From the NCBI RefSeq assembly GCF_000150275.1, contig NW_002060947.1:4808267-4872266 (forward strand): a stretch of 64,000 bases of DNA, given 5' to 3'. The notes below the pieces were generated by a model. It made no database searches, was not told the DNA's origin, and saw only the letters and a program-made list of their open reading frames with translations. The position numbers and the translations under genes were made by a program. Position 1 is the first letter of the stretch. Every line of letters begins with the position of its first letter. This DNA is from Trichoplax adhaerens. Taxonomy: Eukaryota > Animalia > Placozoa. Positions 12,566-55,817 of this stretch are shown piece after piece.

Positions 12566-14120
12566 CTAACAGTTTGTACAAATTTTGCTGACTAATAATT
12601 TTCTTTCAGCATCTCTAAATTTACGGTGTAGACTATTATGTTTATTGAATTCTGCATTTATGAATTTGATTCCGATTTTAAAGATTCTATCATCGTCTAA
12701 GCTTCGATGACGGCGATGAAGAATTATACTTTCAGAATTAATTGTTGACATTGCGATATTCTTATTATTTGGAATATCTATGTTATTATTTTCATTTGAA
12801 AGTAGTGAAGAGGTGGCTTGTCTTAGCTGCGCTGTTGATTTTAATGAAATATCTGATGCATTAACAGTTCTATCTTCAGGCTTGTCATAACTAATTGATT
12901 TATTGTTGACATCATTTGCCTTATCGTTAGCATTAATTATAGTAGCAGAATCATTTTGATGCTCGACATTATTGGTTTTATCACGATTACTATCATCACC
13001 ATTAATAGGTTCTTGATGCGGTATACTATTATTAGATGAAGATCCAATTCCATGAATGATTGTTTGGTTCCGGGCAGAGCTCAAATTAATGTTAGTTGTC
13101 GATGTATATTCGAATGATGATGATGATGACATTTTCTTACTAATAAATGCAACCAATCTATTGAAACTTGCAGTTCCAGTAGCTATATAAATATATGGAT
13201 TGATAGCAGAATTTAAAGGAATAGCCAAGATGACCGCAAATTGTAATATAAAAACGTTTATACTACCTTGAATGATTCCTAAAGCAGATATGACATAAAT
13301 TGGTAACCATGCAGCTAAATCAGTAACTAAAATAAGTGATAGACGGATAGCAATCGTACCATTACGAGATTGTGCATTGCTACGAATTGAACGCCTTGTT
13401 TTACTGACCTCTCTAAGTAACAATACGTAAATTACTAATGTTATGATCCATGAAATAAGTTGTATTAAAACAAATGAAAGGGTCCAGGTTGCATAAAAAC
13501 GATGGCTTAAATTACTAGGAGAGCAGATGAAACTGAATTGATATAAGCGTAAATCTGCTGGTTGATTAATACTCATAATTACTGGTATAGCAACATAGAT
13601 ACAAGTAACCGACCAACCCAATCCTAATGCAATTTTAGTACGCTTGAACCTTACATGTGATGCTGTAAATGGATTAACTGTGATACTATAGCGATCTATG
13701 CTTATTAGCAGCATCATAATAACTGACATCATACTAGATGTACTTATTAAAAATGATGCAATAATACACGCTGGACTCTTAAGCCATTCTTCAGCATATT
13801 GAGCGTAACGATCGTTATAAATTTGATCATTAACACCAATAATGATAAGATATGTTGACATTAAAAAGTCAGAAAGAGCCAGGCTGTTAAAGACGAGTTC
13901 GGTAGACTTGCTCGTTTTTTTCATTTTGTTAGAGCGATTTGTTACAATGACAAGGATATTCCCTATGAAAGCTGCAATAGCCATAATCCAGACAGACAAT
14001 TTTAATGATGTATGAACGAGAATATTTTCACAACTAGATGCTGAATCCAAATCAGGAACAGGTGAGCAGGTTGTAATTTTAGCTGGAACTATACAGCATA
14101 AATATGGCCTTGTTGACGCT
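12566..14120 (-). CDS. LGR-A terminal exon: hinge, 7TM and cytoplasmic tail
   Basis: Core of the 558-aa ORF. The acceptor AG lies at 14122-14121; there are seven hydrophobic segments plus DRY and NPxxY. Confidence 0.92.
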
Positions 14121-17100
14121 CTAATAACATTTATTGACATAAGAGAAATAAATAAGAAGATAAACATTCTGATAATATTTAAGAAATCATGGATTACACC
14201 AATATCAATTTTAAGAACAGGATTATAGTTTGCAAACAGCACCCGTTCGAAGTTATACGGTTAATACTATCTTAATAATATCCTACTACTGAATAATTAA
14301 TTCGGCTAATTTTAATTGAAAAGAATAATATAACCGACAACATTATATTTACATTGCTGATAGTGCAGATGAACCATAAAATGAGCTTTCTGTTATAGTT
14401 GCCATTGGATTTGATTTTATCGATCTAAGAGAAGAATATAATTTTTACTAGGATTCTATTATTCGTAAACACCATAAACTTAAAAGACGTAAATATCTTG
14501 TTTTCGCTACATTTAATATATTGTTTTTTCATGTATGCAGTTTATTTCATCGTTTTAGAGATATTTTTACTGTGACATCTTTTCGATCTGTGGTACTCAC
14601 AATAGTTGCAATTTGGAAAGTACCCTCAAGCAACGGTTTGTTAAAATTCTTACGTTATTGAAATCTAAATATCTACAAGTAAATTAACATAGGCGAAATT
14701 AAATATTATTAATGGCATATTAAAATGTAGGTAAGAATAGATAATATGTGATAAATACTTACAGTTGTAATAAATTGGGGGCAAAATGTAAAATAGGAGC
14801 TCTTCCGCAAATAATAGACAATTTATTATGTGCTACATTCCTGCCAATGAAAATTAGCATTAGTACGAAAAATGATTAAAGTATTAAAAGCTTGTTCTTG
14901 CATAACTGGGCATATTTTTTATTATGCAATCGTATATATAGTTGTATCCGTCTAACTGTACATGTGCATGTGGTATTATAGTTGAATATTTCATTCTAAA
15001 GAAGACACTTTAATAGCATAAGCCACGCTTACAGTATCCTTAATGCATCGAAGTAGACATTGTTACTATTGGTAATTGTCCTTAATGCATTATCAGCCAG
15101 GTTTCTAAATATATATTTATAACATTCTTATTAATTGGATAATAAGAGACATGAATATAGATTAATATGATTTTCCTGATCAAATACATAATTTTAAATC
15201 ATAAATAAATTTAACAATTAAAGCTGTCAATTTTCAAGACTGCTACTTATAAAATGACTTACAGTTCCTGTAAATTATAATCATTATCTCGAAAAATTGT
15301 AGAGACATCGACGATTTCAATAGAATTGTGATTTAGGCTCCTATAATGTTAATCAAATTAGTCACAAATAGCAATAGCAATGATAATAGTTTCTTTAAAC
15401 TGCTAGTGATGCTATCATTAGCCTAAAATTAATAGTAACATTATGGTTCAAAAGGTAAACGACAAACTTAATTTTGATTACTTGATTTTTAATATTAATG
15501 TTAGATGAATCATGATTTATACAAGTAGAAGTACATGCATGGAGAGAAGAATATAAACATGTGTGTTCCATCATGACGAACTTTCGTTGAGATCTTTCCT
15601 GCCTTTCAGCTAGTGATCTCTTCTGCATTAGCTGTTACAGTGACTATATTCCATTCTATGCACATTAACTACATTTATGGTTAGTTTTTCACAATTTGAA
15701 AGCTATTTATAGTTTTCCGTAAATATTTCAAGTTACACTATCAAATGAAAGACAAGATATGAGATACTGTGAACAATCCCCGTGATAGCTTGATCTTAGC
15801 TTTATTGTCGGTTACATCTTAAATGCAGCTAAGTGTTTGTCTAATAAATAGGAAAATCATTTTTAACTATGATTAGCTTCTCTTGCTCAACGTGAATGTA
15901 ATGAAAAGTATAATCAAGTTATCCTAGTTGATTCACAAGTATTCTAAATAAATTGCAATAATTTGATTAACTGGAAGTATTATGAAAGACTCATGCCTAC
16001 ACCGATATTATGGTTTTGCATTAACTGCACCGCGCAAATATTTCGTAGATTGGATAGTTAACTGTATTATCAATAGATTATAACAGTCGTCTGTTTAAAA
16101 TAGTGAAATAACTCATTAATATTGGTTTAAGTATGTCATATCTTACCTGATTTATGAGTTATACGAACGATATTAAATAAAATGTAATTTACCGTTTCAT
16201 ATTTGAACACTTTATTAATGATTAAAGGATTCTAACTACATAACTTACAGAATTTTTAAATTGTTATTTAAATGAATAAATTCTTCTGGTGGGACTTCAC
16301 GAAGATTAGTGTTGCTTAGGTCACTAATCGGTTAATATACAATAAAATATCAAGATTTATGACAAAAGTTTAGCTACTTATAATAATGCAAGCCATCTTC
16401 AAGTTCATACTTTGAGCAATTATTTATTAGGACTTAATGGACGATATCAGCATTTACTCACATAGAATAACTATAGCATGTATTGATAGTAGGTGAGTCT
16501 GATACACAAGATTCCATCTTATAAAAACCTCGAATAGCTTGTTTAATGGCCGATAGAGACATATTGTTATTGCCTAATGAACTATAGATTCATGTACATT
16601 AATGTAATAAGTTATGAGTCCAATGCTATTTAAACATTAAAGATTCATAGATTGTGTATTTATATAATATTCTAACCTTAATGTGTACAATTTGTACAAA
16701 TTTGACGCTAAGAGCAACACTTACATTCCTCTAAGACTGGGATTCCTCTTGAAATAGGATTGCGGTATTGCTGTAATGTTATTACCGGCTAACAGCCTGC
16801 AATGGTATGCAATAGTAAAATATTAAGCTAAATAATACTAAAATGCAAGGTTTAACTAAGACAATTGAGTTTTCTCAATATGCAAAAACTATTCCTTTAA
16901 TTAATTAGACTAAAATGATGTGTTGATTAAGTATTCAATATTGATTGTCAGCCGGATACTTACAAATTTGTCAGTTTACTTGATAATTTAATCAAGATTT
17001 GATCGTATAATTCAATCCCATTTGATATAAGATTATTATAACTTATATCCCTTTTAATGAATATAAAAATTACTTGAAGTAAATCCTTCAAATAGAATTA

Positions 17101-20100: not shown

Positions 20101-23100
20101 TGTTAATATTATTTTGATTACGGAACGGTTTGCATATGCACTTAATAATTTAGAAGTTTAATTGATTGGACTAAAATAATTGCTACAGTTGATTAATTTA
20201 CGAAAGCAGTAATGACACTGGCAATAAGAAGATAATTTATGAATTATCGTCGCAATACTGATAGTCTATTCCGTAGTCTTGCTAATCTATCGTTTCTTAC
20301 AGTTCCTTCAAGTTAATTGTTGAATTAAATGTATTCGGCTTAATATACTCTAGTCGGTTGTCATTTATATTGCTATAATTCAAAAGAAAAGAAAGATGTT
20401 ATGTGAATGAGTAAAATTTATTCTATTACTGCTCTACTATAATTACACCAAGACGAAATACATACAACGTAGAGAGCATCGTGAAATTTTGAAATGATGG
20501 AAAAAGTTCGGTTGTGAGCCTAGTGATTCTGTTCATGCTAACATCGCTAAACATTAAGATTATCAACATTTAAGTGATTACATCTATATAAATGCTTTAG
20601 AAAGATAGATATGGTAGCGTCTCTATCTCATTTGGATTAAATTATACAACTTAAAGAATCATTGCATGGATTTATCGTATTCTGAGTATTACTTGATGTA
20701 ATCTACAATAGCTTATTCAAGTTTGTAAGCCTTAAGAGCTAGTGAGAGGACACTTGGTAGCATTCCGATTTTTACATTATGATGCACGTATATCTCACAA
20801 GAGTTCACTTGAGTTCACTTATGCAAAGTATTAACTTACATAGAAGAAATGGCAGGAAGATTTTGGAAAGAAAGACTGGAGGCACTAATTAATTTGTTGC
20901 TAGAGATATTGCTAAAAAGATTTTAGTCGTTGTATTACTGTAATATTTCGATTGCATTTTAAAACAGTTAGAAAATAAAGTATATGGAAATTCACTTCTT
21001 GGCTGATCACGACTGTAATGTAATCAATTTTCTGTTTGTTTTATCTACTTGTATTTTATAATATAAGTCGAATTACATTTTTTTCAAGTGTTGAAAACAT
21101 CCAAATACTTTAAACGTATGGATTAAATTATTGGAAAGTTCCCTAAGTTAATAATTTAAATCAAATGCATTTCAGATATAAATTCTATATCTTTCGGTAG
21201 TTGGCTATATTATATTGTATGAAAAACAATTAGTAAAATAGAGTGACGTAAATATAAATGGCTACCATAAGATGATAAATTATAATATAGTTATGAGAAT
21301 AAATTAATATTCAATGCTTTCTTCCTCTGCACAAATAAGATTTTTCGAGTTTTCAAACAACCGGTTTATTATAAATTAATTATTGAATTAATACGGAAAC
21401 AGATTGGATAAAATACTTTACGATATGTACGATACAGGATTTTTTGTTGCATTGTGACATCTAGGATAGTTCAATGTTAATAATTGTAACTCACATTTTG
21501 GAAATGTTGTAGGTAATATTAGATGAACAGGCCATATTGACTTTTCGTATTTTATTTTTGGATAATCCGCTATTATATCATAAATCAAGAAAAATATTAT
21601 TTCTTTTACCAATATATAGTCTACATCTTTTAGAAGGGTGTGTGTTACGAAATTTAGCTTTTTCGTAAAATGCCTCCAAGTGCTTATATTCTACTTACTA
21701 GTGTTGTAAAGATTTAAAAGTATCTAGAGAAAGATCTGTTAGATAGTGAAAAAGATTTCCATCAAGCCAACTACACGTTGTAACAAAACAAAAATGTTGA
21801 GAAACATGAGAAGTTTTATATTGGTAATTGAAATATTTACTAGGATGCCATAAAAATGTACTGTTTGGGGTTTACAATCTCTTAGGCTCGCAATCCAAAA
21901 AATCGAAATTTGAGTTATTAAAATTTAGCAAATCTCTTAACTAACACAAATAGCACAATTTCTAAAAACACTACTGAATGCTAACTTATACAGCTGAACA
22001 ATAATCACACTTTCAATTAGAAAATTTACAAAATTTAAGGAAAAGGTTTCATTTGTAAAGCTAATCTATGGCACTTCATAGAAATTATCAGGTACTAATA
22101 TTTTTCGATTTATTCTTTTGTAAAAAGAATATAAACTAACATATTTTAATAACAAAACATATTTTAGATACGGCAGTTTCTAAAACACCAGCTAATATCT
22201 ACAATATATGCAATATATATAGACTGCGAATCTATAACTATTCGTACGAACCTATGAATGCAAATCTGAATCAAAATAACTAAAGTCTGGGTTATTTTCT
22301 ATATATATATGCAATTAAAAATAATATTCTCACATTTCGGTAATATTTTTCAGGCCGGAGAAGGCATATGGTTGTATGGATTGGATTTTATTTGATCTTA
22401 AGTATCTAATTGGAAAAATTTTTAATATTACCAAAGAGATTTTACTAAAACAATGATTTGTCTTCTAGTTTATCAGAAACAGTAATAATTACTCACAACA
22501 ACTGCAGCTTTGATAAATTNNNNNNNNNNNNNNNNNNNNNNNNNNNNNNNNNNNNNNNNNNNNNNNNNNNNNNNNNNNNNNNNNNNNNNNNNNNNNNNNN
22601 NNNNNNNNNNNNNNNNNNNNNNNNNNNNNNNNNNNNNNNNNNNNNNNNNNNNNNTCATAATGAGTCTTACGGTCCCAGTTAAATCAGATTAATTTTGAAC
22701 CTATGTTATCAGCCTTAACTGGTGACTAAGAAAATACTAAGAGTTGTATAATAGTTATATTCTCTTTAGCTTATAAGAAGTAATCAGGCACTAGCCAATA
22801 AGTTGATCTAAACTGACAAATATTACAGTGAGTAATGGGCTTTCAGTCGCACTTAAATCGAATTAATTTTGATACAAGCCTCAGCTTGTAACTAAGAAAA
22901 CACTAAGGGTCGATTGTTTTTCTGATCTCCTTGACTTTAAATTACTTTACTACTCGATACTGACGATTTTCATCGCCAGGTAGTCTCTGCAACAACATAT
23001 TTCTCCTAGACTAAATATCAAATTCTATTCATAGTCCTACTAATTTATGGTATCGTAAAATAAATTTCAATTAATGGTATTTAAACAACATTTTAAAGTA

Positions 23101-26100
23101 TGCCATTTACTACGCAAGCTAAGATAATGATGATATTGTGAGTAGATACCAAATTGTGTTACCTTAAGAAGAAAGGCATCAAGAATTTTTATATTGCGCG
23201 TTTAATACTTACAAACTTTTTAGACTATGAAGGTTGCTGAAGACCGTCTGATTGAGTGAAGGCAGGTAATTATTAGTGATATGCCTATGATAAAATGAAA
23301 TAAATAATTTAGAGCCAGAAAATGCTGCTAATGAGATTTCCATCTACCGAATTAGTAATATATTTAACCAAATGCTGGATAGAAATAAGACACTAATTTA
23401 ATAACCGGAAACAATGTAGTCTTACGTATGTATTTTACTAGTTTGCCATCAAGAAAGTTCTTAATTTTCATTGAGTTTCGAATTGTTTAAACTTATTACG
23501 CGTCATAATATCGTAATTTTATCTATTATTTCAGTTGCATCTTATTCAGTTGTCATTTGTTAGCTCTTAATACCAGAAGTTTGTTGCAAATCAGCTTTTT
23601 TACGAGAGTAACATTGAATAAATATTTGAATTTACGAAACTTGGGAGAATAACTTATCTCGTTAACTTGTAAATCTTACAAGGATTCAGATATCTTTGCT
23701 TTTACGTTAAAAAAATAACAAGATAAACGATTTTATATAACCTGCCAAGCCTATAGTTATACTTTTCTCTAATAGTTAAAAATATCATTTGTCATTTCTA
23801 TTTATATATCTTAGCAGAGAACTTTTACTCAATTTATTGGTATTCATAGATAAACTCGCCTGATGGCATGGAATCTTAAATCAAAGTCGCCTTCCGCTGT
23901 AGTTTACGAAATGATTTAAAGTGTAACTTATAATCAATTTTCTGCTAGAATTATAGCTGCGAGGACTTGTCTTGTAACTGATTAATTTTTAAACCGCCAT
24001 ATAATCATATCTGTCACACTATGGCACAAAAATTTACGGCCGTATATTGTAATTGTATTAATCATAATTCACAGTACAAGTATTGAATCGAAATCATGAC
24101 ATCAGAATACGCACATGTAAGTTCATTAAAATTTAAGCAAGCAATCTATTTATAACGGCAGATGGACAGCGATAAATCTGCGTTTAGCACCCATGGTAAA
24201 ATTATAAAATGTGAACGAGTACATACGCTAAAGTTGTATTGTGATTTTAAATTGTATGATGTGCAAGATATAACATTTTTAATTTAATGAAGGAATTTAA
24301 CTTGTATGTATGCAGTTATTAAAGATTTAGACTTACAGCTTTTCGAGTTTATTCAGTCCAGTAAAAGCATTAATTTCCATGTAATGAATTTCGTTAGACG
24401 TTAAATCCCTAAATCGTAAATAAACCTAAGCAACTTATTCTTACATTTATTCTGTATACCTTTTCTAATAATAGATTAGTTTCGAAATTTTTTTGTATAC
24501 TAAATTAGCAGTAATTATATGTAACAGTACTGTAATGATAAAATAAGCCATGTGGAGTAGAGTGCGTATAGCTAGCAGTTAATTATATTATATTTTCCGG
24601 ACTTTGTCTGTGTTTAGATGCTAAGCTATATACTCTACATATAAAGATGTATTTGTGTTGATTATAATTTGTGTATCACTGATTGCCCATTAATTACTCA
24701 ATTTTTATTAACTCAAATTTTGGGTTACAAGGCGAACCGAAGTAATAGCAGGAGACTATTGCTCGGCCATTATATCGAAATATTACTGGAATCATACTTT
24801 TTAATGCATAATTATAAAAGGGCTTGTTTGCTGAGCATTGATTGCTTAAACCTATACTGTTGCTATAGCTAGTAGATTTAGACTAGTTTCCTAGATAGTT
24901 GATGAAATAAAATATAAATGTGTTGTTAGCTAGCCAAATAGCATAATTTTTTGTGTACTTTTGGCTTACATCAAAATTTAAACCTAGTGTTTTAATCATA
25001 AAGTTCAAATGAAATGATGAACTTTCTTATGTCCACTTTTAGCAGTCAAATAGTACAATATTTTTTTCTGGTGTGATTTAGATAGTTAAAAAATTGAAAA
25101 AATAAAATGGCTCGATATTTGATAGTTACTTGGACCGCTGATCTTATGGTAAGCTACATTCTCTTAAATGCAGTATTTTCATNNNNNNNNNNNNNNNNNN
25201 NNNNNNNNNNNNNNNNNNNNNNNNNNNNNNNNNNNNNNNNNNNNNNNNNNNNNNNNNNNNNNNNNNNNNNNNNNNNNNNNNNNNNNNNNNNNNNNNNNNN
25301 NNNNNNNNNNNNNNNNNNNNNNNNNNNNNNNNNNNNNNNNNNNNNNNNNNNNNNNNNNNNNNNNNNNNNNNNNNNNNNNNNNNNNNNNNNNNNNNNNNNN
25401 NNNNNNNNNNNNNNNNNNNNNNNNNNNNNNNNNNNNNNNNNNNNNNNNNNNNNNNNNNNNNNNNNNNNNNNNNNNNNNNNNNNNNTCTAATGTCAGGATA
25501 TGTTAAACAGTAGTTTCTAGTACACTGTTTGGCAAGACATCTATTAAAATATAGACTTCAAACTGCTAGGACTTCTGAAACTAGACAGTATAGCAATAAT
25601 TTATACGCAAGTATCATCGGAAATTAACTAGTTAGATAGTTACATTTACCGTAGCATTAAAATGGTACTTACAGCGTTATTAGTGATGCCAGAGATTTAA
25701 AAGTATTCACTTGCAAATATCGAATATTATTATGGCTAAGTAACCTATAGTTTGTTCATAAGTTAAGTAATCAGTCAAATTTCTTTGTAATAGTTTTTCT
25801 TATGATATATCAGAGATTCAAGATATTTTTGAACGAATGAGCATAAATACTCAACCTACAAATGTGTTAGGTTATGTAGTCCATAAAATGTTTTCTCATG
25901 TATACGCTCCAACGAAGAAGTATTCAAATATCTACGAAAAATTTTATTTTACAACCATTTAAATGTAAAAAAATGCCGTTAATTCCTTAAATTTGGATTA
26001 TTTAATATTTTTTCGCTGCAGATGTTACAAAATAATACTATAGTTTATTTATATCATTTAATAAATGGACTGCTTAAATATTAAAAATATATAGCAATGA

Positions 26101-36027: not shown

Positions 36028-36776
36028 ATCTTTATACCTCAAAACTGAGAGTGTTGTTTTGCAATGAAGAAATGCTTATGAAATCTGCTAAATACTAAAT
36101 AATATATATTCTATTGCACAGAGAAGTCTATAAAATTTTATAAATCTTTCATTAGCATTCAATATAGCTAATCTGCGTCAGCATGCGTCATTGGTCTTCT
36201 AATCTAGAAGATATGTAGTATGCTGTAGCCGTTCTAAGAATACGTTGCTGTATTTACCAATGTTATGATTGTGCAATATTTATGCAACCAAAGTTAAATT
36301 ACTATATACCAAAGCTGGTAAGCTACTTCATTGCAGACAGGAAATGATAGCAAGGGGTTAATTAATGGATCAGTTTGTATATCTTCCTTCGGTTTAAGAC
36401 AGTCATCTAATCTAGATCAAAGGAACAATTTCTTGATGACTTTCCTAATCTGCTCTTTATTAATAGCCTTAAAACAAGAAACTTTATCAAAATATCTTTC
36501 TTCTTTTCATAATATGTGAAATATAAATACAAATAAATGCTATGCAATGTAAAATGGCAGCCTCCGTAGAACAAAATTCACGAATAATTATCGATACTTT
36601 CATTTTTAAAGAACGTTCAATTTTCACTAAGTAATATACCGCAGATCGTATAAAATAGGTATTCATCGAATGGTGTATTAAGGTATTTAGACTTACGAAT
36701 TGACGAATAATTTAGCATTTGAAAAGCTTCTAGACGATTATCGTCAAGTCCTGTAATACTATATCTAATAAATACG

Positions 36777-38139: not shown

Positions 38140-41100
38140 CTAGTAGACAATCACGGAAACCAATCACAGAAGAGGATCAATAATGAAAAATGGGTATAAC
38201 TTGATTAGTTTTAGCAATAACTTATGGCAAATTTATGTCTACCTTTTAGCTACATGGCACAGTATCAGATAGTTAAAAAATAGGCATTGTTTTATAGTAT
38301 TTGATTACGAATGTAACTGTACTATACCACAAGAACTTTATCATTATAGGGGAAATAGACTTTTAAGGGAATTGAAAGTATAGTACTGCAATTAAGATAC
38401 GATACTTCTATTACTAGTATTTTAGCCTAATGATATATATATATATATACTTACACAGTATTGAGCGAAGTTGAGCCATAAAAAGAGTTATCACGAATGT
38501 AAACTAACGGATTTGATTTTATTGACCTAGATAGAAAACATAGAAATAGTAATTTCGGCTTAGCTGCGGAAGATTAGCACGATAAAAAGTAAGAAATATA
38601 CTGTGAGTGCAAAATCAGTATTTCAAGTAAATAAAGTATGTAATTTCCGTTCTAAAAATTACAGTACACGATGCTCTCTGTAAGAAAATCTTAGCGCTTA
38701 CAATAGCTGCAATTTGAATAATAAACCAAAGCATCGGATATCAAGGTAGCGAATGCCATTTTGGTCCAAATAACTATCACATATAAATAAGTAAGTTCAG
38801 CATGGAATAGACCATTCTAAGTTTACTGCATACTGAAATATAATAGAAGTTTACATCTCTAATAGGTTTGGTCCAATTCCTAATACATGGGACTTGCCGC
38901 AGACTTCTGATAATTTATTTCGAGCTACATTTCTGTTTAAAAATTTTTTACAACATCAATCGGAGAGTTTAGTGTCCTAAATCTTAAGTTTAAAGCTTTA
39001 CTGTCACGCATAAAAATGCTAATTTATTGCATTAAAAGATGCTAATAACCACATAGATCGTTGGATTTATACTATCTCCTTTTGGAATAATTTATTAATT
39101 AATATTTATTCTTCATAGTCACGTACAGTATCTTTAGTCCATTAAATTGGATGTTATTCGGATTCTTAAATTCATTGAGTTGATTATCAGCGAGATGCCT
39201 ATATTTAATAAAAATAAAAATAAATGAGGGCCACGTATATTTAAATTTTGATTGCTATAAGGCCTTCTTCGTCCATTACATTAGGTAGCTAAATATCTAT
39301 CGCACTTCCACGCTATCGACTTACAGTTCCTGCAAGTTATTATCAGTATCTCGGAATATTTCTGACGCATTAACCGTGACTAACTTATTTTTATTTAATT
39401 TCCTATTTGAAAATTCAAATAGAAATATTTTGTCATTAAATCTCTTCAGTTAACAAAGTTATGAAAAATTTAATGATATTAAAGATAAAAAAGTTAATTA
39501 CAATATTTTTAGGAAGCCATTTAAGTGAACAAAGATGCCAGGCGGAATTTTTTTTAAATTACTGTAGCTCAAGTCTCTATTTTTGAATACCGTAACAAAT
39601 ACTATGTATTAGTATTAGAATTTTTAACAAACATGTTTAGAAATACGGTATTAGCCCTGCTTATGCTATTAACAAAATAGGAAATTTTAAATGGATAATA
39701 AACCATAACATTTATAATAGAAAAATACTTACATAGAATAATCGAAACATTTAATTAATGTTGCATAGATTGGTGAAAAACATAACGTTGTTATGTAAAG
39801 TCCCCTGATTGATTGTTTAATGTTCGCAATAGACATATTATTTCTCCCGATTGAACTAATTATTACAATAAATGTAGATAGAATGATGTTTAGAAACTCC
39901 ATGACGTCAAATTTGTTAATTTTTATTTACTAAATATCCTCAAATGCTGATCAGCATCGTATTACACCCATTTAGTAGTATTCATGCTTGTTACTAACAA
40001 TGATCTTAGGTATATATTCCATTTAAAATAAACTTGCGGAATAGATTCAATATTATTTCCAGCTAATAACCTGGGATAATAAGATATCATGATAGAACTT
40101 ATAGGTTATTACCAACTTAAGCAAATTGAGAACGAAGTTATCTAATAGTAACTAATTCCTCTTAAATGAAATCAACATGTGCATCTAATTTGTGACTTGC
40201 GGTGGCATTTCACTTACAGCTCAAAAGGTAACCCCAGCAATTTAATTAGTATATCTTGATACAAGTCTATTCCATTTTGTACCAGGTTATTGGAGCTCAA
40301 ATCTCTAGAATAGTGAATGATATGAATCGATGTTCTATGTAGCTCTCAATTAGTTCTACTTGCTTCGCAATATCTAAAATTCACAAATATTTATAAGAGC
40401 TAATATTTTATTTACAGTCTTTGCGTGAGACCATTTAATGTCCTGTCGCAGTTATTTGAAATCCCCGAAATGTTATTATTGGAAAGGCGTCTTACGAAAG
40501 CAAGAAAGATTAAAATATGAATTAATTTCGTTTAAACTAATCTGTACCATAAGTTGGTATAACATACAAACATATGCTTATTATTTGAATTTTAGCCAAA
40601 ATTTAATTCTTTATAGTGAACTTTTGAAGCGCAATATATTATCAGATCGTATGGCTGCAATAAGTAAACATATAATAGCGCATTTGCTGAAGAATTTAAA
40701 TTATGAATTCCATCAAATCTAGTTGTTCAAAAAATTTACTAAAAAGCAGAGTTCAGCATGATCTATTATTATAAATATTGAATAAAAATCAAATCCAAGA
40801 AAAAAGCTAAGTTTATCTACTTACAAGTCTCGGACAGTTTTATAAATGGAACTACAAGACAAGTTGGCTAGTCTGTTTTGATTCATTGACCTAAAATTGA
40901 AAGATCCTATCGGTTTAAAGCTAATCGAATAAAAGTACTGAGACACTGCAATTAAAATAATGGCAATAAGAACTTAATTTCTCTTTAGTATATTTCCGTT
41001 GACTTACAATGTTCTCAAGCTAATTAAATTAGTAAAACTATCATCAGCAATTTCTGCTATTAAATTATTATCCAGTGATCTGTAAGGTAACAGAGATGCG

Positions 41101-44100
41101 AAATATTAAATTCGAGTCATATGGAAGTCAAAATCGATTCCTAAAGCTTACTTTGTAAAATCAACTTACAACTTTGTAACAAGTGTTAAATTAAAGAAAG
41201 GTGCTCCGGCTAAAGAGACAATCTTATTTCCATTGCAATATCTAGCATCACAATTTTGGGTAACATTTAAATTAAAAGTGTTGAATTAATTTGAAAATTT
41301 TAAAGTAATACTGACAAGGTTGATAGTTGGCTTATGTCTTGGATTAAAAATCCATTTAGTGATACAAGTTTATTATAACTGATATCTCTAGAATGAATGT
41401 GGAATAGAGAGTTAAACATATAATTATATTATTGAGGTTAAATGATACTAGCGACAAAATAAGTCAACTTACAGCAACAGTAGTTTAGAGAGTCCCAAAA
41501 ATGCTTGATTTTCAATAATCGAGATTTGATTATGATTGAGATATCTACGATGTTAAAGGTAGTGTACAGTAAACAAAAATAACTAAAGAAAATTAAAACA
41601 GGTTCTTTTACCAAATTTTTTGGTAATTGAACTACTGCAGTATTTTGAAGGCTTAATCCTGAATTTATTTCAAGACTTACAGATTTCGTAGTTCTTTACA
41701 CTTTATAAACATGCCATCTCGAATAGCTTTTATTTTGTTATGGCTAATATCTCTAAAAAGTGTTCAAGTACGGTAAGAAATCATGTACAAAACAGTAATA
41801 TAACTAACAATGCCAGCCTATTACAAGCAGACATAAATTTGAACTTAAATGCAATTTATAGTCTATCATCCTTACACATGTACAAGTTTCGTTAAGTTAC
41901 CAAAATAGTTTCTTTTTAATTCTGACAAACGATTCCAAGAAGCAAATCTTACAGTTTAAATAAATAGATACAAAATTAATATTAAAATTTCACTGTAGCA
42001 GAAAGGTGTTTTGAAAATAGAATTTAATTAGCTGTATGATGGAAGACGCATTCTTATAATTTAATAGAAGGTCTCCAAGGAGATGAATATATATTTTTAG
42101 TAAATGGAATGATCAGAAATTAGTATGCACTTACAAATTTGTTAAAAAATGAAGTGGAATAATGAAATCTAAAGTGTTCAATTCGTTTTTATGAATATTT
42201 CTATCAAAACATAATCATAAAATCGTATTAAATTAGTTACTTGACATGTTGTTAATATAACTGTCTCTCATTTCTTCATTTATCTGCTGGGTAAAATAGT
42301 AAAATGAATTTTAATGTAATCGTATGAAACTGCTAAATAATAAGACAGTTGATATTTAGTTAGTGCAACAGCAGAAATTTGAAGCACTCTATCAAATATC
42401 GTGAAAAGTTTCAATTTTCTTATCTTTTATTTTATAACTCTGTAAAGTAATTACGTGAAAATTAGATGATAATTTGTAAAATATTTATAGGTTGATAACT
42501 CCAGAAATACGATGAGAACTTATCGCAAAGTAGAGCTATAACACAAGAACTTGAAATATTTTGAACGTGAATCAGTTTAAACTCAAAAGCTTGATACTGA
42601 TTTACGAAAGCTCAATCAATATAATTAAACTTATGCTAACAATATCAAAATAAAATGACTGAAGAAGTAATTAGAATGTACTAATCATTCTACTATAGTT
42701 ACAATACAAAATGTAGAGAATCTCTTAGCTAGCGTCGAATTGTAGCTTATTACTGATTGATATTCTAGAAATGCATCCTATGAAAGATTTATCAGATTCT
42801 TCTCCTTGATGCATGTTGTTATAGCAAATTCAAAACTTATTGTTTTACTTACAGCTCTTTTAGGTGTAATAGTGGAGCAAAGCTATCGGACTTTACATAT
42901 CTTAATTGATTACTAGAAATATTCCTATCAATCAAGGCAATTCGATTAGATTGTTGATAATTGAAGCTAAAGAAATAATATAAAACTAAAAGTATTTCTA
43001 TATTTACAGAATAGTCATCGAATTTGCGTCTTTCAAAGTAGTAAAGATACCAGATGCAAGACTTCTTATTCTGTTCTCACTAATATCGCTATGATCAGTC
43101 CGATTATAATTAAAATAAATTATGTAAACAATCAATACGATAATCTCGGTGAAAGACGATAGTTTGATAGCTAAAGTGATAAAAATTGCGATTTTAATAG
43201 TAAATAATTGACTATTTATGTAGATAGTTAAGATTGAGTAAGGATTAGGTAATCGACTTTAACATATATAAGGTAAATTTACCTAGCAAATAATCGAACC
43301 TAATAACTATTTTGAATTTGTTTATATATACGAGTAGTTATACAGTCAAGCAACATAGATCAATAAAATTACGTCCTTTGCTTTTACTAAAAATATCTTT
43401 TAAAATAGTAAAAATGAGTCTATAGAAAATTGAGTAGCAGTTTCATTGAATTTCAGTTTAAGATTTCATTCAGAGTATACGTACATAACTGATAAACAAG
43501 GAATTCCATCAAGCGATAGGCTTTCATCGCTGCTTAATCTATTGCTGGAGATATTACTAAAATAATGCAAATTATTTCATAATTAGCGTCTCTATAAGGA
43601 ACGATGTAAATCATTAACGGATACTGGTATCATATACTAGCGTCATTCAAGTAGTCTACGATTATTATTAGTATTTCGATAACAGTGGCATAGACAATTT
43701 CCAGTAAATGTGTAATTTAATCCTAATTATCTTTTGATCAAGCTAAGTATTTACATAAGTTGTAAACATTGAAAACATCCCGACACTTTAAATCCATTTA
43801 TTAGATTATTTGATAAATCCCTAGCACGAAATGACAATAGATTAGTGATTGAATAACTTTCGCAATAATTATAAGGTAATAATTTAGTTTTTGATCCAGC
43901 AATACTTAAATTTAATACCAGTTTATCTTTTTCCTGTAAGATGATATACTAGCAGTTTAAGATATACAATTATACGTAAAATTTGTAGAAAGACCAGGAT
44001 TTATCATAATTGTCTGTTACAGTAAATATAGGCTAAATAGACTACCATATGATGGAATTACACATTATTGCACATTTAATAACGTGGCAATATTATGCTG

Positions 44101-47100
44101 ATACAAGTAGTGTAGCTGATCTAAATGCAAAAAATTGTTCACATGTTCTACAATACTTTTGAACAAAGTTCATATAAATAAGAATTCTATAGCAGACCGC
44201 CTAAATACCAGCAGCATTGGTCCTTAAATACGCCTCGACGAAAGAGCAAAATCATTTCAGAAATACTTACATTCTACTGATATTGTAGCTGATATTTGAT
44301 GGACAGGCTAGGTCTATTAGTCTCATTTTATTCTTAGATAAACCTCTGTTATATGATTCATAATAAACCTATAATCAATATTCTACCTGGTAATATCTAA
44401 TAATATTGCAATTACCAAAAGGTATTCCTTATCTAATCACAGATTCAATACTTACAAGTAATGCAGAGAGATAAAATTATTTAAAGGCAATTCGGTAATG
44501 TAGTGAAATGGATTTCCATCAAGCCATCTTGTATCATCGTTTAGTAATTGAAGAGTTCATACAATTAATATGGTATGTAAAATGGGAATATTGAAACACC
44601 AACTAAATTTTATTTAGCTCATCGAAAGCTGCTATTTTCAAATAGTATCAGATAAAATAGATAGCTAATTTTACTCCTACATTTCTTCAATATTATTTAA
44701 GCCATGAAATGCTTTGGAAGAAATAGTTTGAATATTGTTAGATCTTAGAAATCTGAAACAGTAAAAATAATCAATTTAAAGACGTAACTTGACGTAACTT
44801 AAATGACTACTTCTACCTGAGATCAACTTACAGCGACTTTAAATTAGCTAAATCAGTAAATTGATAATCTTCAATAGATCTTATCTGATTTTCATCCATC
44901 AATCTAAAAAAATGGAACGAGATCCGTATTTGAATTTGTTGTGATTAATATTGACCGAATGTTTAAATAATATTGAGTCATAGTATTTTTTCTTAAAATT
45001 TAGTGATAAACATAAGAAATACGGGGTTGCCAATTACCGAGATATACATTCAATAACTAATAAGACTTACAGAATTTTCAAGTTGTATAATTCACTGAAA
45101 ACAGTAAGATTCAGCCTTACCAAATAATTATTGATGATGTTCCTAGTAGCATTCAAAGTTAAATATAGTAATTGAAATTAGTAACTGTTCTAGAAATTTC
45201 GTGAATAGTATGTGAATTGAAATGATTTGCGATTATTACAAAAGGAAGTATTGACGAGGGATAAAAATAAAATTAAAATTTTCCAATCTTAATATTTTCG
45301 ATGCAAGTTATAATGCTTTTTATCCTTTCCGAAAGCTATGATTACAATTATAAGGTGCCAAATACTATATATCTATTTAAAAACTTCCTTGTTAATGTAA
45401 TTAATAGAAAATATGGCTATTAAACAGCCTACAATTCTTAACTAGACTTCTAAACGAGAATGATACGTTCTTGTTATACTGAGATATTATCTTTTAATAT
45501 GCTTAACTTATAACAAGAATTTTATACATAGAATTGACTACAATAATATTATTTCAAAAGATGATTTAAAGGGTAATAAATAATAGCATACGATATAAAT
45601 TTACAAGAACGTTATTTTACTTATAGCAATCTTACAATTCTTGGAGAGTATTTAGTCCTGCAAAGGCGTTTATATCCAATATTTGAATTTCGTTTGAGGC
45701 TATATACCTAATGTAATAATTTAAAACGTTAGAGATTGTTAAGGGAATGGCGAAATCGTTGTTTTCAGCTCCTTTAAATGATTTATTAGATTCTAATTGT
45801 CAACAAATACAAGCTATTCCACGTATTTTCAGAAGTTAATAAATACAGCTCCGTTGAAAGCAAAATTTGAGCAAGATAGCAGCACAATTTTAGCAGACCA
45901 CTCACAATTTCTTCAGCGAGTCAAGGGAAGAAAATCTATAACCTTCCAGAAATGTCAATTTATTTTGGCTCAAATTTCTATTAAGTAACATTATTCCTGT
46001 ATTCAGTTGAAGGAAACTTACAAGCTAACTTTAATATCTACTCTATTATAGTTCTTGGATATATTTTATAGTTGCAGCTATACTGGATTTATATGGCCTA
46101 CCCATATATCATTAAATACAAAATTAAGCTGAAACATTTATACTTACAGTATTATAAGTCTAATAAAATTGACTAAAATTGTTTAATTGCCATTTATTGG
46201 CCACGTTAAAGGAAGAATAATAATCCTAAAATTATGCGATGCTAAAACTGTTAGGCTAGCATTAAACTTACAGCTCTTCCAGTGCTAGAAGATTAGCAAA
46301 AGTATTCGGCTCCAAGCTTTGGATGCTATTAATATGTAGGGTTCTAAAAAATCATTTTTTAAGTTAAAATTTATAACCCTGGATTAAATGATATTTAGTA
46401 TATACCAGATCTTGCATGAATAGGGTTGCTCTGTATCCCGATGATATTTTCGTAGATACTTTATAGAAAAATTTTACTAGTATGTACTTATAACTTATAG
46501 GTCATTAGTAGATTACGCTCTAACAGTAGGCTATATTTATGCTGGCTTACAGTATTTTTAAATTTGTTAACGGATTAAATGCCTCTTCGTCAACACTCGT
46601 AATGAAGCTGTTATGTAGATTTCTACAGAAGTATGAAAGAAAATATCCAGTTAACCTAAAGCTTAAAGACAGTTTATATCCAATGAATGGATATACGTAT
46701 TTTCCTTATTTTGGTATAAGAATCGATAATAGTGTGTAATGCGGCAATAAATTTTTTAACGGGCAATAAGTTCTGCTTTGTTAGCATTACAATTTCTCCA
46801 ACACGGTCCCATTTGCCTTGCCAAAGACTTTAGGTGGTATTGAATTTAATAAAGTAGACGATAGGTCCCTAAATTTTTGCGATAGTAAAGGATACTTCAA
46901 TAATATGGCCATTTCTTAGCAAACTTGAATAATTTTTTAGGCAAATAATATTAATAGCAATAATTGCTATAATTTAACTGTAGGCATTAAAAATACTTAG
47001 TACTTAATATTCAGTATTTAATTAATTGAAAATCTAATGTTTCAAGTAACATCGTAATTTAAGTATTCTCTATTGAAGTCGGTTATCAATCTACAGTGTA

Positions 47101-50100
47101 GAGCTTACAGTATCTTTAGTGATGTAAGATTGGCAAATGCATTTTCAGACAAACTTTGAATTTTGCATCCGCTCATGTCTCTGGTGTAGGAAATAAAAAA
47201 GATATCCTCAGCAATATTTTTATTCCTAAAACGACTAGAATATCTCTATTAAGACTTATAACAGAATATAAAATCTGATTATAAGAATAGTGACTTACAA
47301 AGTTTTAAGCATAGCATTATTAGAAAATAAGTTGGCTTCAATGTCGTTTATGGAGCAAACTCTCATGTCACTAAGTAATTTAAGAAATTTTTTCTGTCTT
47401 AAAAATCTGAATAATTATAACAGAGTGCAGTCTTTGGCATAACTTACAGTTTCGATAAGTGAGTAAGGTACAAAAATGTTGTATTTGATATTTGGCTAAT
47501 TCCATTCCCTGATAATTCCCTTACAAAGAAGTATAGGTTTAGAATATTGTTCAATACCTAAGAAAGTAGCCTAAATCGTATAATCGATTACAGTATCTGA
47601 AGTTTGGATGATCCTACAAAAGCTGTGGAGCTGATAGTAGATACATAGTTATCAGTGATAATTCTGAAAGAGACATGATATCGCTTTAATATTAATTTCT
47701 GCAAGATAGCTATGTAGCTATAGTTGGAATTAATTGCTCAGTTAATGCTAACAAAATCTTACAATCGATTTAGGGAAGGTAGGTTACCAAACATAATGCT
47801 GCTGACCGACACAAGTCTATTCCAAGATAAATTTCTAAAATCAAAAGTAGATTTTCAACTTTAATTATTAACATTCACCTTGAAACATTTATCGGCTAAA
47901 ATCATCTTACAAGAATGTGACTAGCTCATGTATGTTATAAAACTAATTACTAGTCTTATACTATTCTCCATAAATTCATAACTGTTAGCCAACATCAAAA
48001 TATCAAATATTAATAAATTTCTACTGCATACGTAGTGTGATAAAAGACTATAAATGCTTTGCAAACTGATAAATGTAATAATATCACAAATAACGTAATA
48101 ACATTCAGACAGTATCGCAGTAAAACTTAAGACTAGCGTCATATTAAATAAATGAGGAGAAAATGAAGTTTTTCATTTAATAAATATCGTGCAATGTGCA
48201 ATGTTACAACAATTTGAAACATTTAAATACTTTAAATCGAAGTTGTTATCTTTTATCTGGCATAGATTTTGGGAAATAAATGAATTAAGTTTGTTTAGTG
48301 AACCTTGTGCTACATTATTGCTGAGATATTAATTTATTGTTTATATAGTTGATATTAAGTTTTACAACAGCATCTGTTCTATAAAAGCACGAAATTTAAA
48401 TGTTTATAAAGTAGCTTACATATAACTTAGTTTAGTGAGATTGGCGAATGCTCTAGGTTCGATTATTTCTATTTTATTGCTGAATAATCTCCTAAAAATG
48501 TAAAAAAATGATGCGATCTGAATAAATTATTAATAAGAATAATAAAGTAAATTTTTAATTTATTCTAAAGTTATAAGTCTGATATATAAATTGCTATTAT
48601 TATGGCAAGCATTACAGTAACTCCAAATTCCACATTCCATACAATAAATGACTTCTAACGATTGTTAATTCGTTGCCATACAATGATCTAGATAGAGAGG
48701 ATGTTCAAATAGTAAGGAAATTTTCAACAAAATTAAGTATCTGATGTTCTGATGTCTTAGATAATAGTTCTAATTCTCATTAACTTACAGGCGCTTAATG
48801 CTAGAAAGTTCAGAGAACATATAATTTTCCAAATCCAGGAAGTCATTTAAACTGACGCTCCTAGTTTAAAATTGTATCCAATAACCATTAATTGAGTTTA
48901 CTTGTTTACTAAAAGTACTTTAAATTTACAATACTCTACAAAGAGGGCTATTTGAAAATAAATGTTCAACGAACTTAGTAAAACTTAGTTACATGATCAT
49001 TCACTCGGAAAATATTCACTACTTACTATATACGTCGATTATAAAATATATTATCAAGTTTAAATAGGTATAAGTGTTAAAAATCAATCCTGATGAACTA
49101 AGTCGAACGAAAAGGATTTACTTTAAATTGGTAGTCATAAACATTTGCTCTCAACTTACAGAACTTCCATATTTACAAACTTGGAAAACACAGAGTTAGT
49201 CAAATTTTTTATGGTGTTGGCAGCGAGACTCCTGCAATTATAACTTATCAGATTCATAACTTTGTTTTATTATTCAGCTATTTAGTTATTTTGCTGATAA
49301 TTAATATTAAGATATACAAATGCAACTTTCAAATTAATAAACACTAAGATCAAACCATACTCAGTTTTCGCGTAGTATCGTAGTCTAATTAGAAAACGAG
49401 CCTTTCAATCTATAAGATCACTAGCTACAAGGATTTTAAATCAATTACATCTAACTTACAATAGGTACAAGTCTTCGATGCCATCCCAGCTTTTCTGACT
49501 AACTTTTGCAATTAAGTTTGTATTAAGGTATCTAACCGATACAAATGCATTCTATTTACTACATAAATCTAATTTTATTTCTTAGTGATCGCTTTTTCAA
49601 ATGGAAATATGATATCAAATCTATCTACTTGCAACTTACAATCTCTTCAACAATGGCATATTTCGAAATACCCCTTCCTGCACTTCGTGAATTCGGTTAT
49701 CTGTTATTGCCCTTTTGATAGAGTACCGTAGTTGTCGATAAATTATAGCTCTTTATTTATTTCTAGTTGATGAAAGAATTCGATATTTGATCCGCTCTAG
49801 TATACTATACTTAACTTACAAATAAGTTAACTTGCTCAATCCTCTAAAGCCAATATCTTGTAAGTTACTTATTTCATTTGTGTCCAAAGAACTACATCGG
49901 AAAATGATATTCAATGAATTTATTATTTATACCTACATTCATCAGGTGTAATGCCATCTAGATGGATACAGGTATTATATAAATCATAGCAGTCAATTTT
50001 AACACATTATTAACTAAAAAGAATTCTTACTTACTCAAATTAACTGATACTAATATTTTAACGAGAACAACTTACAGTGTCGTTAAATTTGAAAGTGGTA

Positions 50101-51259
50101 GAAATACTCCATCTGCAATTAAGTAAAGCCTATTTCTGGTAATAGATCTAGTAGTTTTGATGTAATATTATATTTAATTAGTAAAAGTGACNNNNNNNNN
50201 NNNNNNNNNNNNNNNNNNNNNNNNNNNNNNNNNNNNNNNNNNNNNNNNNNNNNNNNNNNNNNNNNNNNNNNNNNNNNNNNNNNNNNNNNNNNNNNNNNNN
50301 NNNNNNNNNNNNNNNNNNNNNNNNNNNNNNNNNNNNNNNNNNNNNNNNNNNNNNNNNNNNNNNNNNNNNNNNNNNNNNNNNNNNNNNNNNNNNNNNNNNN
50401 NNNNNNNNNNNNNNNNNNNNNNNNNNNNNNNNNNNNNNNNNNNNNNNNNNNNNNNNNNNNNNNNNNNNNNNNNNNNNNNNNNNNNNNNNNNNNNNNNNNN
50501 NNNNNNNNNNNNNNNNNNNNNNNNNNNNNNNNNNNNNNNNNNNNNNNNNNNNNNNNNNNNNNNNNNNNNNNNNNNNNNNNNNNNNNNNNNNNNNNNNNNN
50601 NNNNNNNNNNNNNNNNNNNNNNNNNNNNNNNNNNNNNNNNNNNNNNNNNNNNNNNNNNNNNNNNNNNNNNNNNNNNNNNNNNNNNNNNNNNNNNNNNNNN
50701 NNNNNNNNNNNNNNNNNNNNNNNNNNNNNNNNNNNNNNNNNNNNNNNNNNNNNNNNNNNNNNNNNNNNNNNNNNNNNNNNNNNNNNNNNNNNNNNNNNNN
50801 NNNNNNNNNNNNNNNNNNNNNNNNNNNNNNNNNNNNNNNNNNNNNNNNNNNNNNNNNNNNNNNNNNNNNNNNNNNNNNNNNNNNNNNNNNNNNNNNNNNN
50901 NNNNNNNNNNNNNNNNNNNNNNNNNNNNNNNNNNNNNNNNNNNNNNNNNNNNNNCTAAGGTAAGTAATATTTTATTAATCGATCATCGTTATATTTTACC
51001 AGTTAATAATTTAGGTTCGTAATATGAGAATTACATAGTGCGATCTTAATGGATCTTAACCTAATAAAAACGTCATTTAAGACATCATATTCTATTTCTA
51101 ATGTATCTAAGTTAAGTAAATAAGCATCAATAACGTACAAGATGGTGACATTATCCATAATTTCATCACCAATTGGAAAATTAGTCATCATTTCGTCGGT
51201 GCATAAAACGGCCGTAGCAACATTACATGTACATTTTGCAGGGCAATTATGGTCCAGCC
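36777..51259 (-). CDS. LGR-B: giant LRR-containing GPCR, tandem paralog of LGR-A (LRRNT, 43 visible LRR exons plus ~3 expected in the gap, hinge, 7TM); signal-peptide exon not located
   Basis: LRRNT exon 51259-51139 (HNCPAKCTCNVATAVLCTDEMMTNFP); single-LRR exons 50147-38455 colinear with LGR-A; terminal exon 38139-36777 with YLCCIVPAKVTTCAPVPDLDSVTSCENIL, ISIDRY, TDLLAWLP and NPYIY. Confidence 0.85.
38455..50147 (-). repeat. LGR-B LRR exon array (43 visible single-LRR exons)
   Basis: Examples: SITRNRLYLIADGVFLPLSNLTTL (50076-50147), YLNHNQISIIENQAFLGLSKLLLL (~41473-41544), SIKSNPLVYIRDNSFYGSTSLNTV (38455-38526). All have phase-2 GT-AG boundaries. Confidence 0.88.
50192..50954. other. Assembly gap (probably hides ~3 LGR-B LRR exons)
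   Basis: N run between the LRRNT exon and the exon equivalent to LGR-A LRR4. Confidence 0.9.
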
Positions 51260-55538: not shown

Positions 55539-55817
55539 GGAACTCTGATTATGCGCACTTCATCTCAAACGAGATTACCGGTCTAAATAGTCTAGTCTAA
55601 TACCAACTTACTGTAGAGTATAAGTTCATTTCACTTTCTCCATAGTGATTCATTCGAGGCAGACTAGTTCCTTTAAAATTAAAGCTGGATTGCCATCGTA
55701 TTAACTTAATTGAGCATCAATCTTATTACCTGTAGCAGAATAACTTTCTTCTATTCAAAAGTATATCCATCAGATCGTTGTTGGTTCAAATAACTAGCCT
55801 AGGATCGAGATAATATC

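Follow-up and report, generated by a model that had tools for sequence, protein, structure and literature searches.

How much receptor lies upstream of a long open reading frame (ORF) that encodes a seven-transmembrane (7TM) domain? The question is raised by a 64,000-nt stretch of AT-rich Trichoplax adhaerens DNA, here called the window, in which only two long ORFs occur, both on the minus strand: 14242-12566 in the gene that we call LGR-A and 38150-36777 in LGR-B. From the sequence alone these had been read as the ends of a tandem pair of giant leucine-rich-repeat (LRR) G-protein-coupled receptor (GPCR) genes, or LGRs, with about 44-46 LRRs each. The tandem pair is confirmed by RNA joints in LGR-A and by mapping of a protein from Trichoplax sp. 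H2 onto LGR-B, and the count rises to 48 LRR positions in either gene once H2 exons fill in what the assembly hides. We consider it very probable that LGR-A and LGR-B are two separate, intact, head-to-tail T. adhaerens genes of a placozoan-specific LGR branch, each with 48 typical LRRs.

Both 7TM ORFs match the Pfam profile PF00001 (7tm_1) over its full length, with E-values of 1.8e-24 for LGR-A and 2.5e-26 for LGR-B, and DRY and NPxxY motifs are visible in each. The two genes share one layout, in which an LRRNT-like cysteine-cap exon is followed by exons of one repeat each and then by a single exon containing hinge, 7TM and a disordered tail. The repeat exons are divisible by three in length, all of phase 1 and, one LGR-A acceptor excepted, bordered by AG and GT. 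Each unit is a typical 24-residue LRR, L.L..N.I..I....F..L..L, and the codon split at the exon border usually encodes Leu. Open 72-nt phase-1 AG/GT exons beginning with the LRR Asn motif number 61 on the minus strand, against no exon-length and phase class above four on the plus strand in the scan of the window. A profile made from the 72-nt exons matches the minus strand at about 65 places and the plus strand at three, all of them marginal. Given this strand bias, 61 against at most 4, together with the profile matches, chance is not the explanation of the exon series.

LGR-A comprises the following parts, with the sites at which the assembly is interrupted or differs from H2:

34142..34160, minus strand: putative start mini-exon, ATG plus 16 nt with a GTAAAA donor, as read from the sequence
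33970..34093, minus strand: LRRNT-like cap exon, CSPGCSC...VCSLPTLTEVP, with a C..C.C pattern, the right phase and predicted borders, ending with 2 nt of a split codon
14353..33759, minus strand: array in one phase, with 45 LRR exons visible in full and a further one represented by its 3' 23 nt (22519-22497)
Starts of the first 15 visible LRR exons, minus strand: 33759, 33559, 33334, 32691, 31998, 31814, 31639, 30569, 30374, 30179, 30016, 27001, 26833, 26625, 26439
Starts of the next 15, minus strand: 26244, 25931, 25744, 24408, 23284, 22405, 21770, 21569, 21142, 20911, 20546, 20372, 20037, 19774, 19609
Starts of the last 15, minus strand: 19397, 19245, 18970, 18793, 18589, 18157, 17050, 16796, 16581, 16323, 15340, 15104, 14840, 14672, 14424
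26554..26730, minus strand: site differing from H2, where LRR exon 14 is lost through a 203-nt deletion and exon 15 has AA in place of AG at its acceptor (26627-26626)
25183..25485, minus strand: gap hiding LRR exon 20; H2 has 1170 nt here with one 72-nt AG/GT exon, SLDLNEIQYL..., the counterpart of LGR-B 45977-45906
22520..22654, minus strand: gap hiding the 5' 49 nt of LRR exon 23; H2 has 172 nt here, and the exon, FLDENGLTAL..., runs on into 22519-22497
12566..14120, minus strand: hinge, 7TM and Ser/Asn-rich tail of about 190 aa in a single exon, with the stop codon at 12566-12568

To follow splicing in this gene, we aligned RNA contigs from three RNA-seq runs and one further run on 6 kb of LGR-A (14050-20049). 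The joints fall exactly on predicted introns, CT..AC on the plus strand being GT..AG on the gene strand, and connect 14120 to 14353, 14424 to 14601, 14672 to 14763, 15340 to 16249, 16323 to 16462, 16581 to 16725, 16796 to 16964, 17050 to 18083, 18157 to 18524, 18589 to 18722, 18970 to 19174, 19245 to 19326, 19397 to 19538, 19609 to 19703 and 19774 to 19972. A joint of 18793 to 18899 was seen as adjacent pieces of a single contig, and the exon starting at 15104 was matched by a 10-nt loose contig end. The first of these joints, present in three runs, backs the 7TM acceptor at 14120. One contig of 1236 nt extends from exon 15340 to beyond 20037. Where loose ends of 221-255 nt extend past 20037, their first letters are those of the end of exon 30 (20372-20301) in reverse complement; contig ends run from exon 31 on into up to four more exons (30-27). 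The LGR-A 7TM exon is shown to be spliced to the last 18 repeat exons (48 to 31), and not to the last ten or so alone, the outcome that the sequence-only reading had named as speaking against a giant receptor.

The same chain corrects the public models of the gene, which are fragmented as had been suspected. LGR-A is represented in the T. adhaerens database by TRIADDRAFT_12560 (358 aa), and the H2 annotation gives it three adjacent models on one strand, of 330, 188 and 894 aa; the 894-aa model carries the name 'Relaxin receptor 2' and is 99% identical to the LGR-A 7TM exon. RNA crosses the split between the 188- and 894-aa models and joins exons 19774-19703 and 19609-19538, which are absent from every H2 model. 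Two further observations concern the RNA itself. At 16500-16501, contigs of three runs read AA where the window reads TG (plus strand), changing Ser to Phe in exon 42; H2 DNA agrees with the window, and this is probably a strain or allele difference. A 281-nt contig at 15032-15283 runs unspliced through the 158-nt intron between exons 45 and 44, reflecting intron retention, pre-mRNA or DNA carry-over.

LGR-B is built in the same way:

51061..51311, minus strand: first coding exon, with start Met and LRRNT-like cap (CPAKCTC...C), its last 2 nt belonging to a split codon
50192..50954, minus strand: gap hiding LRR exons 1-3; the corresponding 729 nt of H2 contain three phase-1 exons (72, 72 and 75 nt) with AG/GT borders
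38455..50147, minus strand: array of 45 visible LRR exons (positions 4-48), all AG..GT and phase 1
Exon starts at positions 4-18, minus strand: 50147, 49891, 49711, 49531, 49231, 48860, 48687, 48491, 47834, 47663, 47519, 47370, 47180, 46868, 46622
Exon starts at positions 19-33, minus strand: 46343, 45977, 45707, 45142, 44903, 44752, 44527, 44345, 43820, 43556, 43088, 42924, 42200, 41947, 41752
Exon starts at positions 34-48, minus strand: 41544, 41387, 41241, 41079, 40890, 40490, 40304, 40070, 39855, 39576, 39402, 39198, 38932, 38773, 38526
36777..38139, minus strand: hinge, 7TM and C-tail in a single exon, with the stop codon at 36777-36779 and the acceptor at 38139 taken from the sequence

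The H2 protein RDD42302.1 (1694 aa, 'GRL101-like') maps on LGR-B exon by exon at 96-100% identity, covering 44 of its LRR exons between 50152 and 38454 as well as the first and the 7TM exons. Residues 1-84 align at 51311-51060 with 98.8% identity, and the first exon accordingly reaches 51311, past position 51259, where the sequence-only reading had ended the pair. Residues 85-155 have no counterpart in the window and correspond to the gap at 50192-50954, and the 7TM exon is 98.9% identical to residues 1238-1694, a mapping that the acceptor at 38139 fits. The exon at 44527-44456 is left out of RDD42302.1, yet it has AG/GT borders and is open in both species and belongs to the best-conserved positions between LGR-A and LGR-B; we read it as a real exon, apparently missed by the H2 gene predictor. 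In the T. adhaerens database, LGR-B appears as a 274-aa 7TM fragment, whose 90% cluster includes RDD42302.1. The 45 visible and three hidden LRR exons of LGR-B add up to 48. The arrays counted by hand from the sequence, with 43 complete and one partial LRR exon in LGR-A and 43 in LGR-B, are therefore real, but the counts were slightly low, since 45 are visible in each gene besides the LGR-A partial exon.

The 5' ends of the two genes are less well defined; the predicted leaders are short, and the hydrophobic stretch at the LGR-B N-terminus is weak. Joined to the next exon, the LGR-A mini-exon would give MIRTLLRFFFLV ahead of the cysteine cap. The LRRNT caps that had been claimed are present as a cysteine pattern, but in LGR-B the cap remains under the Pfam LRRNT cut-off (E 0.0054, 16.8 bits) and in LGR-A a 40-aa piece of it gives no Pfam match. 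With the same exons, LGR-A extends over about 21.6 kb (about 34160-12566) and LGR-B over 14.5 kb (51311-36777). One LGR-A intron, at 29945-27001, measures 2.9 kb, and its LGR-B counterpart 586 nt. Extra LRR exons in the long introns were considered and dismissed, the candidates being low-scoring and none of them occurring in the H2 model of LGR-B.

The gaps were checked on two overlapping H2 loci, joined into a composite and aligned with the window, to which they are syntenic with 97.7-99.4% identity. All gap-hidden exons are divisible by three and in phase, so the reading frame is kept across the three gaps whatever their estimated lengths, and the visible LGR-A exons are all intact with AG/GT borders in H2. 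Opposite the gap at 25183-25485, H2 carries a duplicated block of about 435 nt (composite 35752-36530; L002 about 2804-3582) with a second, identical copy of LGR-A exon 19 and its flanks; one run of 20 N stands between the copies and another after them. This is a probable assembly artefact; the alternative is a real tandem duplication and a 49th LGR-A repeat.

At the exon-14 site of LGR-A, the exon found in H2 alone lies at L002:1673-1744, and pairwise alignment places the deletion at about 26720 in the window. A T-to-A change 24 nt upstream of the damaged acceptor makes a new AG (26651-26650), use of which would yield a 96-nt in-frame exon. No copy of the 203 nt was found elsewhere in the T. 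adhaerens assembly, although such an empty search result proves little. Either the sibling lineages differ in repeat number at this site or the assembly is in error, and LGR-A in this assembly has 47 or 46 repeats.

The two arrays correspond one to one in order, with matching repeat lengths of 24, 22, 25, 26, 27, 29 and 40/41 residues, and exon lengths differ at two positions, by one residue. Irregular repeats that carry cysteines occur at positions 15-18, 26-27 and 38-42. The arrays total 1179 and 1181 aa; their LRRs are 47% identical between the genes, and the 7TMs 65%. Between T. adhaerens (H1) and H2, LGR-A LRR exons differ at 8 of 3321 nt (0.24%) and introns at 94 of 13857 (0.68%), with a ratio of nonsynonymous to synonymous differences (pN/pS) of 0.09; in LGR-B the figures are 47 of 3324 (1.41%), 343 of 8354 (4.1%) and 0.15. 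In both arrays pS is near intron divergence. The lower divergence of exons than introns, together with these pN/pS values, indicates that both arrays are coding and under purifying selection along their full length.

Divergence from H2 is uneven along the window. In 2-kb bins it is 0.45-0.97% nearly everywhere, and 3.0-5.7% at 40000-45999 and 48000-49999, both inside the LGR-B array, with an island of 0.75% at 46000-47999. Because introns carry most of the divergence and pN/pS stays at 0.15, the pattern suggests an old haplotype block and not relaxed constraint. An admixture mosaic, an old allele and conversion from a paralogue are candidate causes.

Units inside one gene are only about 20% identical at every offset, with none preferred, which argues that the 48-repeat array is old and was inherited whole. 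Higher-order block duplication within the arrays was rejected on the same figure, set against 47% for same-position units of LGR-A and LGR-B. A tandem-repeat finder returned nothing scoring 80 or more, as expected of old repeats.

Between the array and the 7TM lies a cysteine-rich hinge of about 35 residues, YLCC..P....C.P..D..SSCENIL. The best solved relative of the 7TM is RXFP1 (95 bits), followed by TSHR (87), FSHR, LHCGR and LGR4 (47). The hinge is collinear with that of RXFP1 residue for residue, as Y-C-x-x-x-P-x-x-x-x-C-x-P-x-x-D-x-x-S-S-x-E-N-L-L, in keeping with the short type-C-like hinge of the sequence-only reading, and its end, ..SSCENIL.., is aligned with ..FNPCEDIM.. of TSHR. An 80-sequence alignment, which includes LGR homologues only 21-28% identical to LGR-A, has CC..P....C.P...D..SSC..LL as its consensus. 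The reported absence of an LDLa module was upheld. Pfam gives no Ldl_recept_a match in RDD42302.1, the full-length LGR-B orthologue, or in the 894-aa H2 protein at E-values up to 1, where the same search scored LDLa clearly in LDLa-bearing LGRs, and motif scans found none in any frame of the window or on the gene strand of the H2 locus. RDD42302.1, which has 7tm_1, contains no TIR domain by Pfam.

For the fold, we used AlphaFold on the 894-aa H2 protein, the LGR-A orthologue, with the 80-sequence alignment; a single-sequence run (predicted local distance difference test, pLDDT, 35) was set aside. The model has a pLDDT of 80 and a predicted template-modelling score of 0.74 (pTM), with pLDDT above 90 over most of residues 1-700, and its LRRs, hinge and 7TM are predicted with confidence. 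By Foldseek it matches full-length LGR4, TSHR, FSHR and LHCGR over 600-800 columns (E 1e-27 to 2e-16), and also a Caenorhabditis elegans LGR. In the predicted structure, which is limited to that part of the H2 orthologue, the last 15 repeats and the 7TM are shown to have the LGR fold.

In a midpoint-rooted tree of 7TM sequences, which was built without vertebrate RXFP, all 13 Trichoplax rows, both genes included, form a placozoan-only clade with 100/100 support. The clade does not fall among the LDLa-bearing LGRs; it stands on the side of these and of the echinoderm LRR-only LGRs, apart from the sampled insect and fish LGRs. LGR-A is nearer to paralogues on other scaffolds than to LGR-B, which suggests that the tandem duplication is old.

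The long array appears to be the rule in this LGR subfamily. At least 60 intronless 7TM paralogues are present in the genome at E below 1e-40, eight of them 55-67% identical to LGR-B. An exon scan that recovers 39 of 45 visible exons in LGR-A and 36 of 45 in LGR-B finds 38-55 candidate LRR exons in the 16-30 kb upstream of five of these paralogues and of one more distant. These loci lie on C1413, C1384 and C1410, and some of the candidate exons may belong to neighbouring genes. A homologue search with the whole of RDD42302.1 was swamped by generic LRR proteins, and the LGR-A orthologue was found by way of a 7TM query.

Several points weigh against two full-length 48-repeat genes as we describe them. 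RNA covers 6 kb of LGR-A, reaching exon 27 at most, and LGR-B rests on a predicted H2 model. The H2 annotation divides LGR-A into 330, 188 and 894 aa, and RNA crosses the second of the two splits only. In this assembly one LGR-A exon is missing and the one after it (26625-26554) has a damaged acceptor. Both N-termini are weak as signal peptides, with predicted 5' ends, and ligand, G-protein coupling and activation mechanism are taken by analogy from other LGRs.

By that analogy, the long LRR solenoid would bind an extracellular ligand on its concave face, and binding would reorient the ectodomain on the hinge. The last hinge residues probably share homology with the RXFP1 hinge as well as with the segment that acts as tethered agonist in glycoprotein-hormone receptors. 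The reoriented hinge would then switch the 7TM and lead to activation of a heterotrimeric G protein, as in LGR types A and C, with no part for an LDLa module. The ligand need not be a hormone. Pattern-recognition or environment-sensing receptors for microbial or prey molecules, close to the pattern-recognition or large-ligand sensor proposed in the sequence-only reading, would be compatible with the gene models, and we regard this role as unlikely but worth keeping in view. The LRR-only ectodomain of about 1180 aa has chaoptin, artichoke, Toll and Toll-like receptor (TLR) ectodomains as its nearest LRR sequences, the family is large and lineage-specific, an exon appears to have been lost between sibling lineages and the LGR-B array includes a highly diverged haplotype block. 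According to Kamm et al. (2019, PMC6321704), canonical TLRs are absent from Placozoa, and GPCRs with lectin domains are found there as scavenger receptors; this absence of TLRs, with lectins coupled to GPCRs, keeps the idea alive. Against it, pN/pS of 0.09-0.15 does not point to diversifying selection, old paralogues keep the repeat architecture rigidly, and the H1 and H2 genomes may show such a divergence mosaic generally rather than in this gene.

A broader and slightly less probable conjecture would make the 48-repeat LGR subfamily, with at least eight T. adhaerens genes, a G-protein-coupled pattern-recognition or environment-sensing system that replaces TLRs and whose ectodomains are still being remodelled between sibling lineages. 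The remodelling part of this idea derives from the repeat exon missing in LGR-A and from the old haplotype block, diverged by 3-6% and confined to the LGR-B array.

Whatever the ligand, the 48-repeat form could itself be rare if the LRR exons were cassettes, alternatively spliced into shorter or variable ectodomains. Symmetric 1-1 phases would leave any subset in frame, the H2 model of LGR-B does omit the intact exon 44527-44456, and the damaged LGR-A acceptor should force skipping or the use of another AG. We nevertheless find cassette use improbable. The joints listed above, drawn from four runs over 14050-20049 with two joints not displayed, link neighbouring exons only and include no skipping; moreover, the exons are under purifying selection, and LGR-A and LGR-B keep all 48 positions.

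It is also quite improbable, in our estimate, that LGR-A represents more than one transcription unit, namely a secreted or anchored LRR protein made from exons 1 to about 21 and an LGR with about 27 repeats. Such a division would agree with the H2 330-aa model ending at exon 21 and the 188-aa model beginning after exon 22, and the intron between exons 21 and 22 is long (1053 nt) and outside the RNA-covered 14050-20049. Arrays split into several genes had been named at the outset as a finding that would count against a giant receptor: RNA contradicts such a split between the 188- and 894-aa models. The H2 annotation is accordingly unreliable at LGR-A. All LGR-A exons are in one phase and have intact AG/GT borders in H2, no start codon or cap-like exon was seen within the array, and the paralogue LGR-B keeps the same 48 positions in one 1694-aa model. 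Finally, decay of LGR-A towards a pseudogene in this strain, to which the 203-nt exon deletion and the AG-to-AA acceptor change relative to H2 might point, is very improbable, since both changes are in frame, the other exons and the 7TM ORF are open, pN/pS is 0.09 and spliced RNA occurs in several runs.

Two intact giant LGR genes remain our preferred account of the locus, and their surroundings can be described briefly. By the H2 annotation, the neighbours are a gene of the tRNA-synt_1e cysteinyl-tRNA-synthetase type at about 59100-61300, a CFAP298 gene on the other strand at about 55800-57900 and, beyond LGR-A, a PXA-domain gene at the window's low-coordinate end (to about 2600). Two plus-strand ORFs, 9411-9719 and 10289-10603, lie where the H2 annotation calls no gene. 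A pseudokinase tail was rejected for both receptors, whose ORFs stop after Ser/Asn-rich tails at the same stops as the H2 models, and a motif scan found no kinase motifs on the minus strand downstream of LGR-A or between LGR-B and LGR-A. Just past the LGR-A stop, a 63-aa minus-strand ORF (12353-12544) encodes an acidic, tyrosine-rich sequence, ..PTDDEYLDVQDYSNL.., which could be an alternative tail exon or chance.

The analysis corrects the public models, namely the 274-aa and 358-aa 7TM fragments of T. adhaerens and, in H2, one gene split in three and another short of one exon. It places an LRR-only ectodomain of about 1180 aa on a GPCR, well over the 34 repeats of the published example, and this size looks like a family trait. 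Correct full-length models are a precondition for expression cloning and ligand searches among at least 41 orphan receptors of an animal without nerves or true TLRs.

How the pair compares with known receptors can be set out from the closest proteins outwards. RDD42302.1 is the syntenic orthologue of LGR-B, and the 894-aa H2 protein corresponds in the same way to the 3' part of LGR-A, both at 96-100% identity per exon; they differ from the present models in that the LGR-B one is without an intact exon and LGR-A is spread over three models, with two exons in none. With type C receptors (RXFP1/RXFP2 and molluscan GRL101), LGR-A and LGR-B share a short hinge, collinear with that of RXFP1, which is also the best-scoring solved relative of the 7TM. 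Unlike them, they have no LDLa, the tethered activator of RXFP1, 48 repeats instead of about 10 and two extra hinge cysteines, and their 7TMs branch beside rather than within the LDLa-bearing LGRs.

Types A and B (FSHR, LHCGR and TSHR; LGR4-6) have the same overall fold of LRR arc, hinge and 7TM, but 9-17 repeats against the 48 here, a long hinge in type A and a more distant sequence. In genes for glycoprotein-hormone receptors, too, each repeat has an exon to itself and the 7TM lies on one exon. Long LRR-only LGRs occur elsewhere, as in the brittle star Amphiura filiformis (XP_072040752.1, 1311 aa) and others of 1476-1559 aa, with ectodomains of about 950-1230 aa. Their only Pfam matches are to LRR families and 7tm_1, and the 7TM begins at residue 946-1245; the 7TMs of these uncharacterised proteins are 26-31% identical to those described here and form a separate clade by an LDLa-bearing starfish LGR. 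Databases also contain very long LGRs of a mosaic kind, which combine LDLa, CUB, MAM and lectin domains and have few LRRs. TLRs, chaoptin and artichoke, which provide the top sequence matches of the ectodomain, resemble it in their long arrays of 24-residue LRRs; the placozoan genes differ in having no TIR, single-pass helix or glycosylphosphatidylinositol (GPI) anchor and in placing a 7TM after the array. TLRs have about 19-27 repeats.

The nearest known system is that of the placozoan-specific LGRs. Hauser et al. (2022, PMC9545775) describe 46 T. adhaerens LGRs and assign 41 of them to a placozoan-specific group, set apart by a hinge of its own and by an unusually high number of LRRs; such expansions had been mentioned in the sequence-only reading. 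The example given, Tadh-LGR-15, has 34 LRRs. LGR-A and LGR-B may or may not be among the 46, whose Tadh-LGR numbers could not be matched because the supplement gives TriadITZ identifiers only. They share with this family an LGR-type 7TM, a many-repeat ectodomain of LRRs only, the family's own hinge, the lack of LDLa and a lineage expansion, and differ in having 48 repeats rather than the 34 of the published example. LGR-A and LGR-B are correctly assembled new members of a published family, which was already known, together with its oversized ectodomains.

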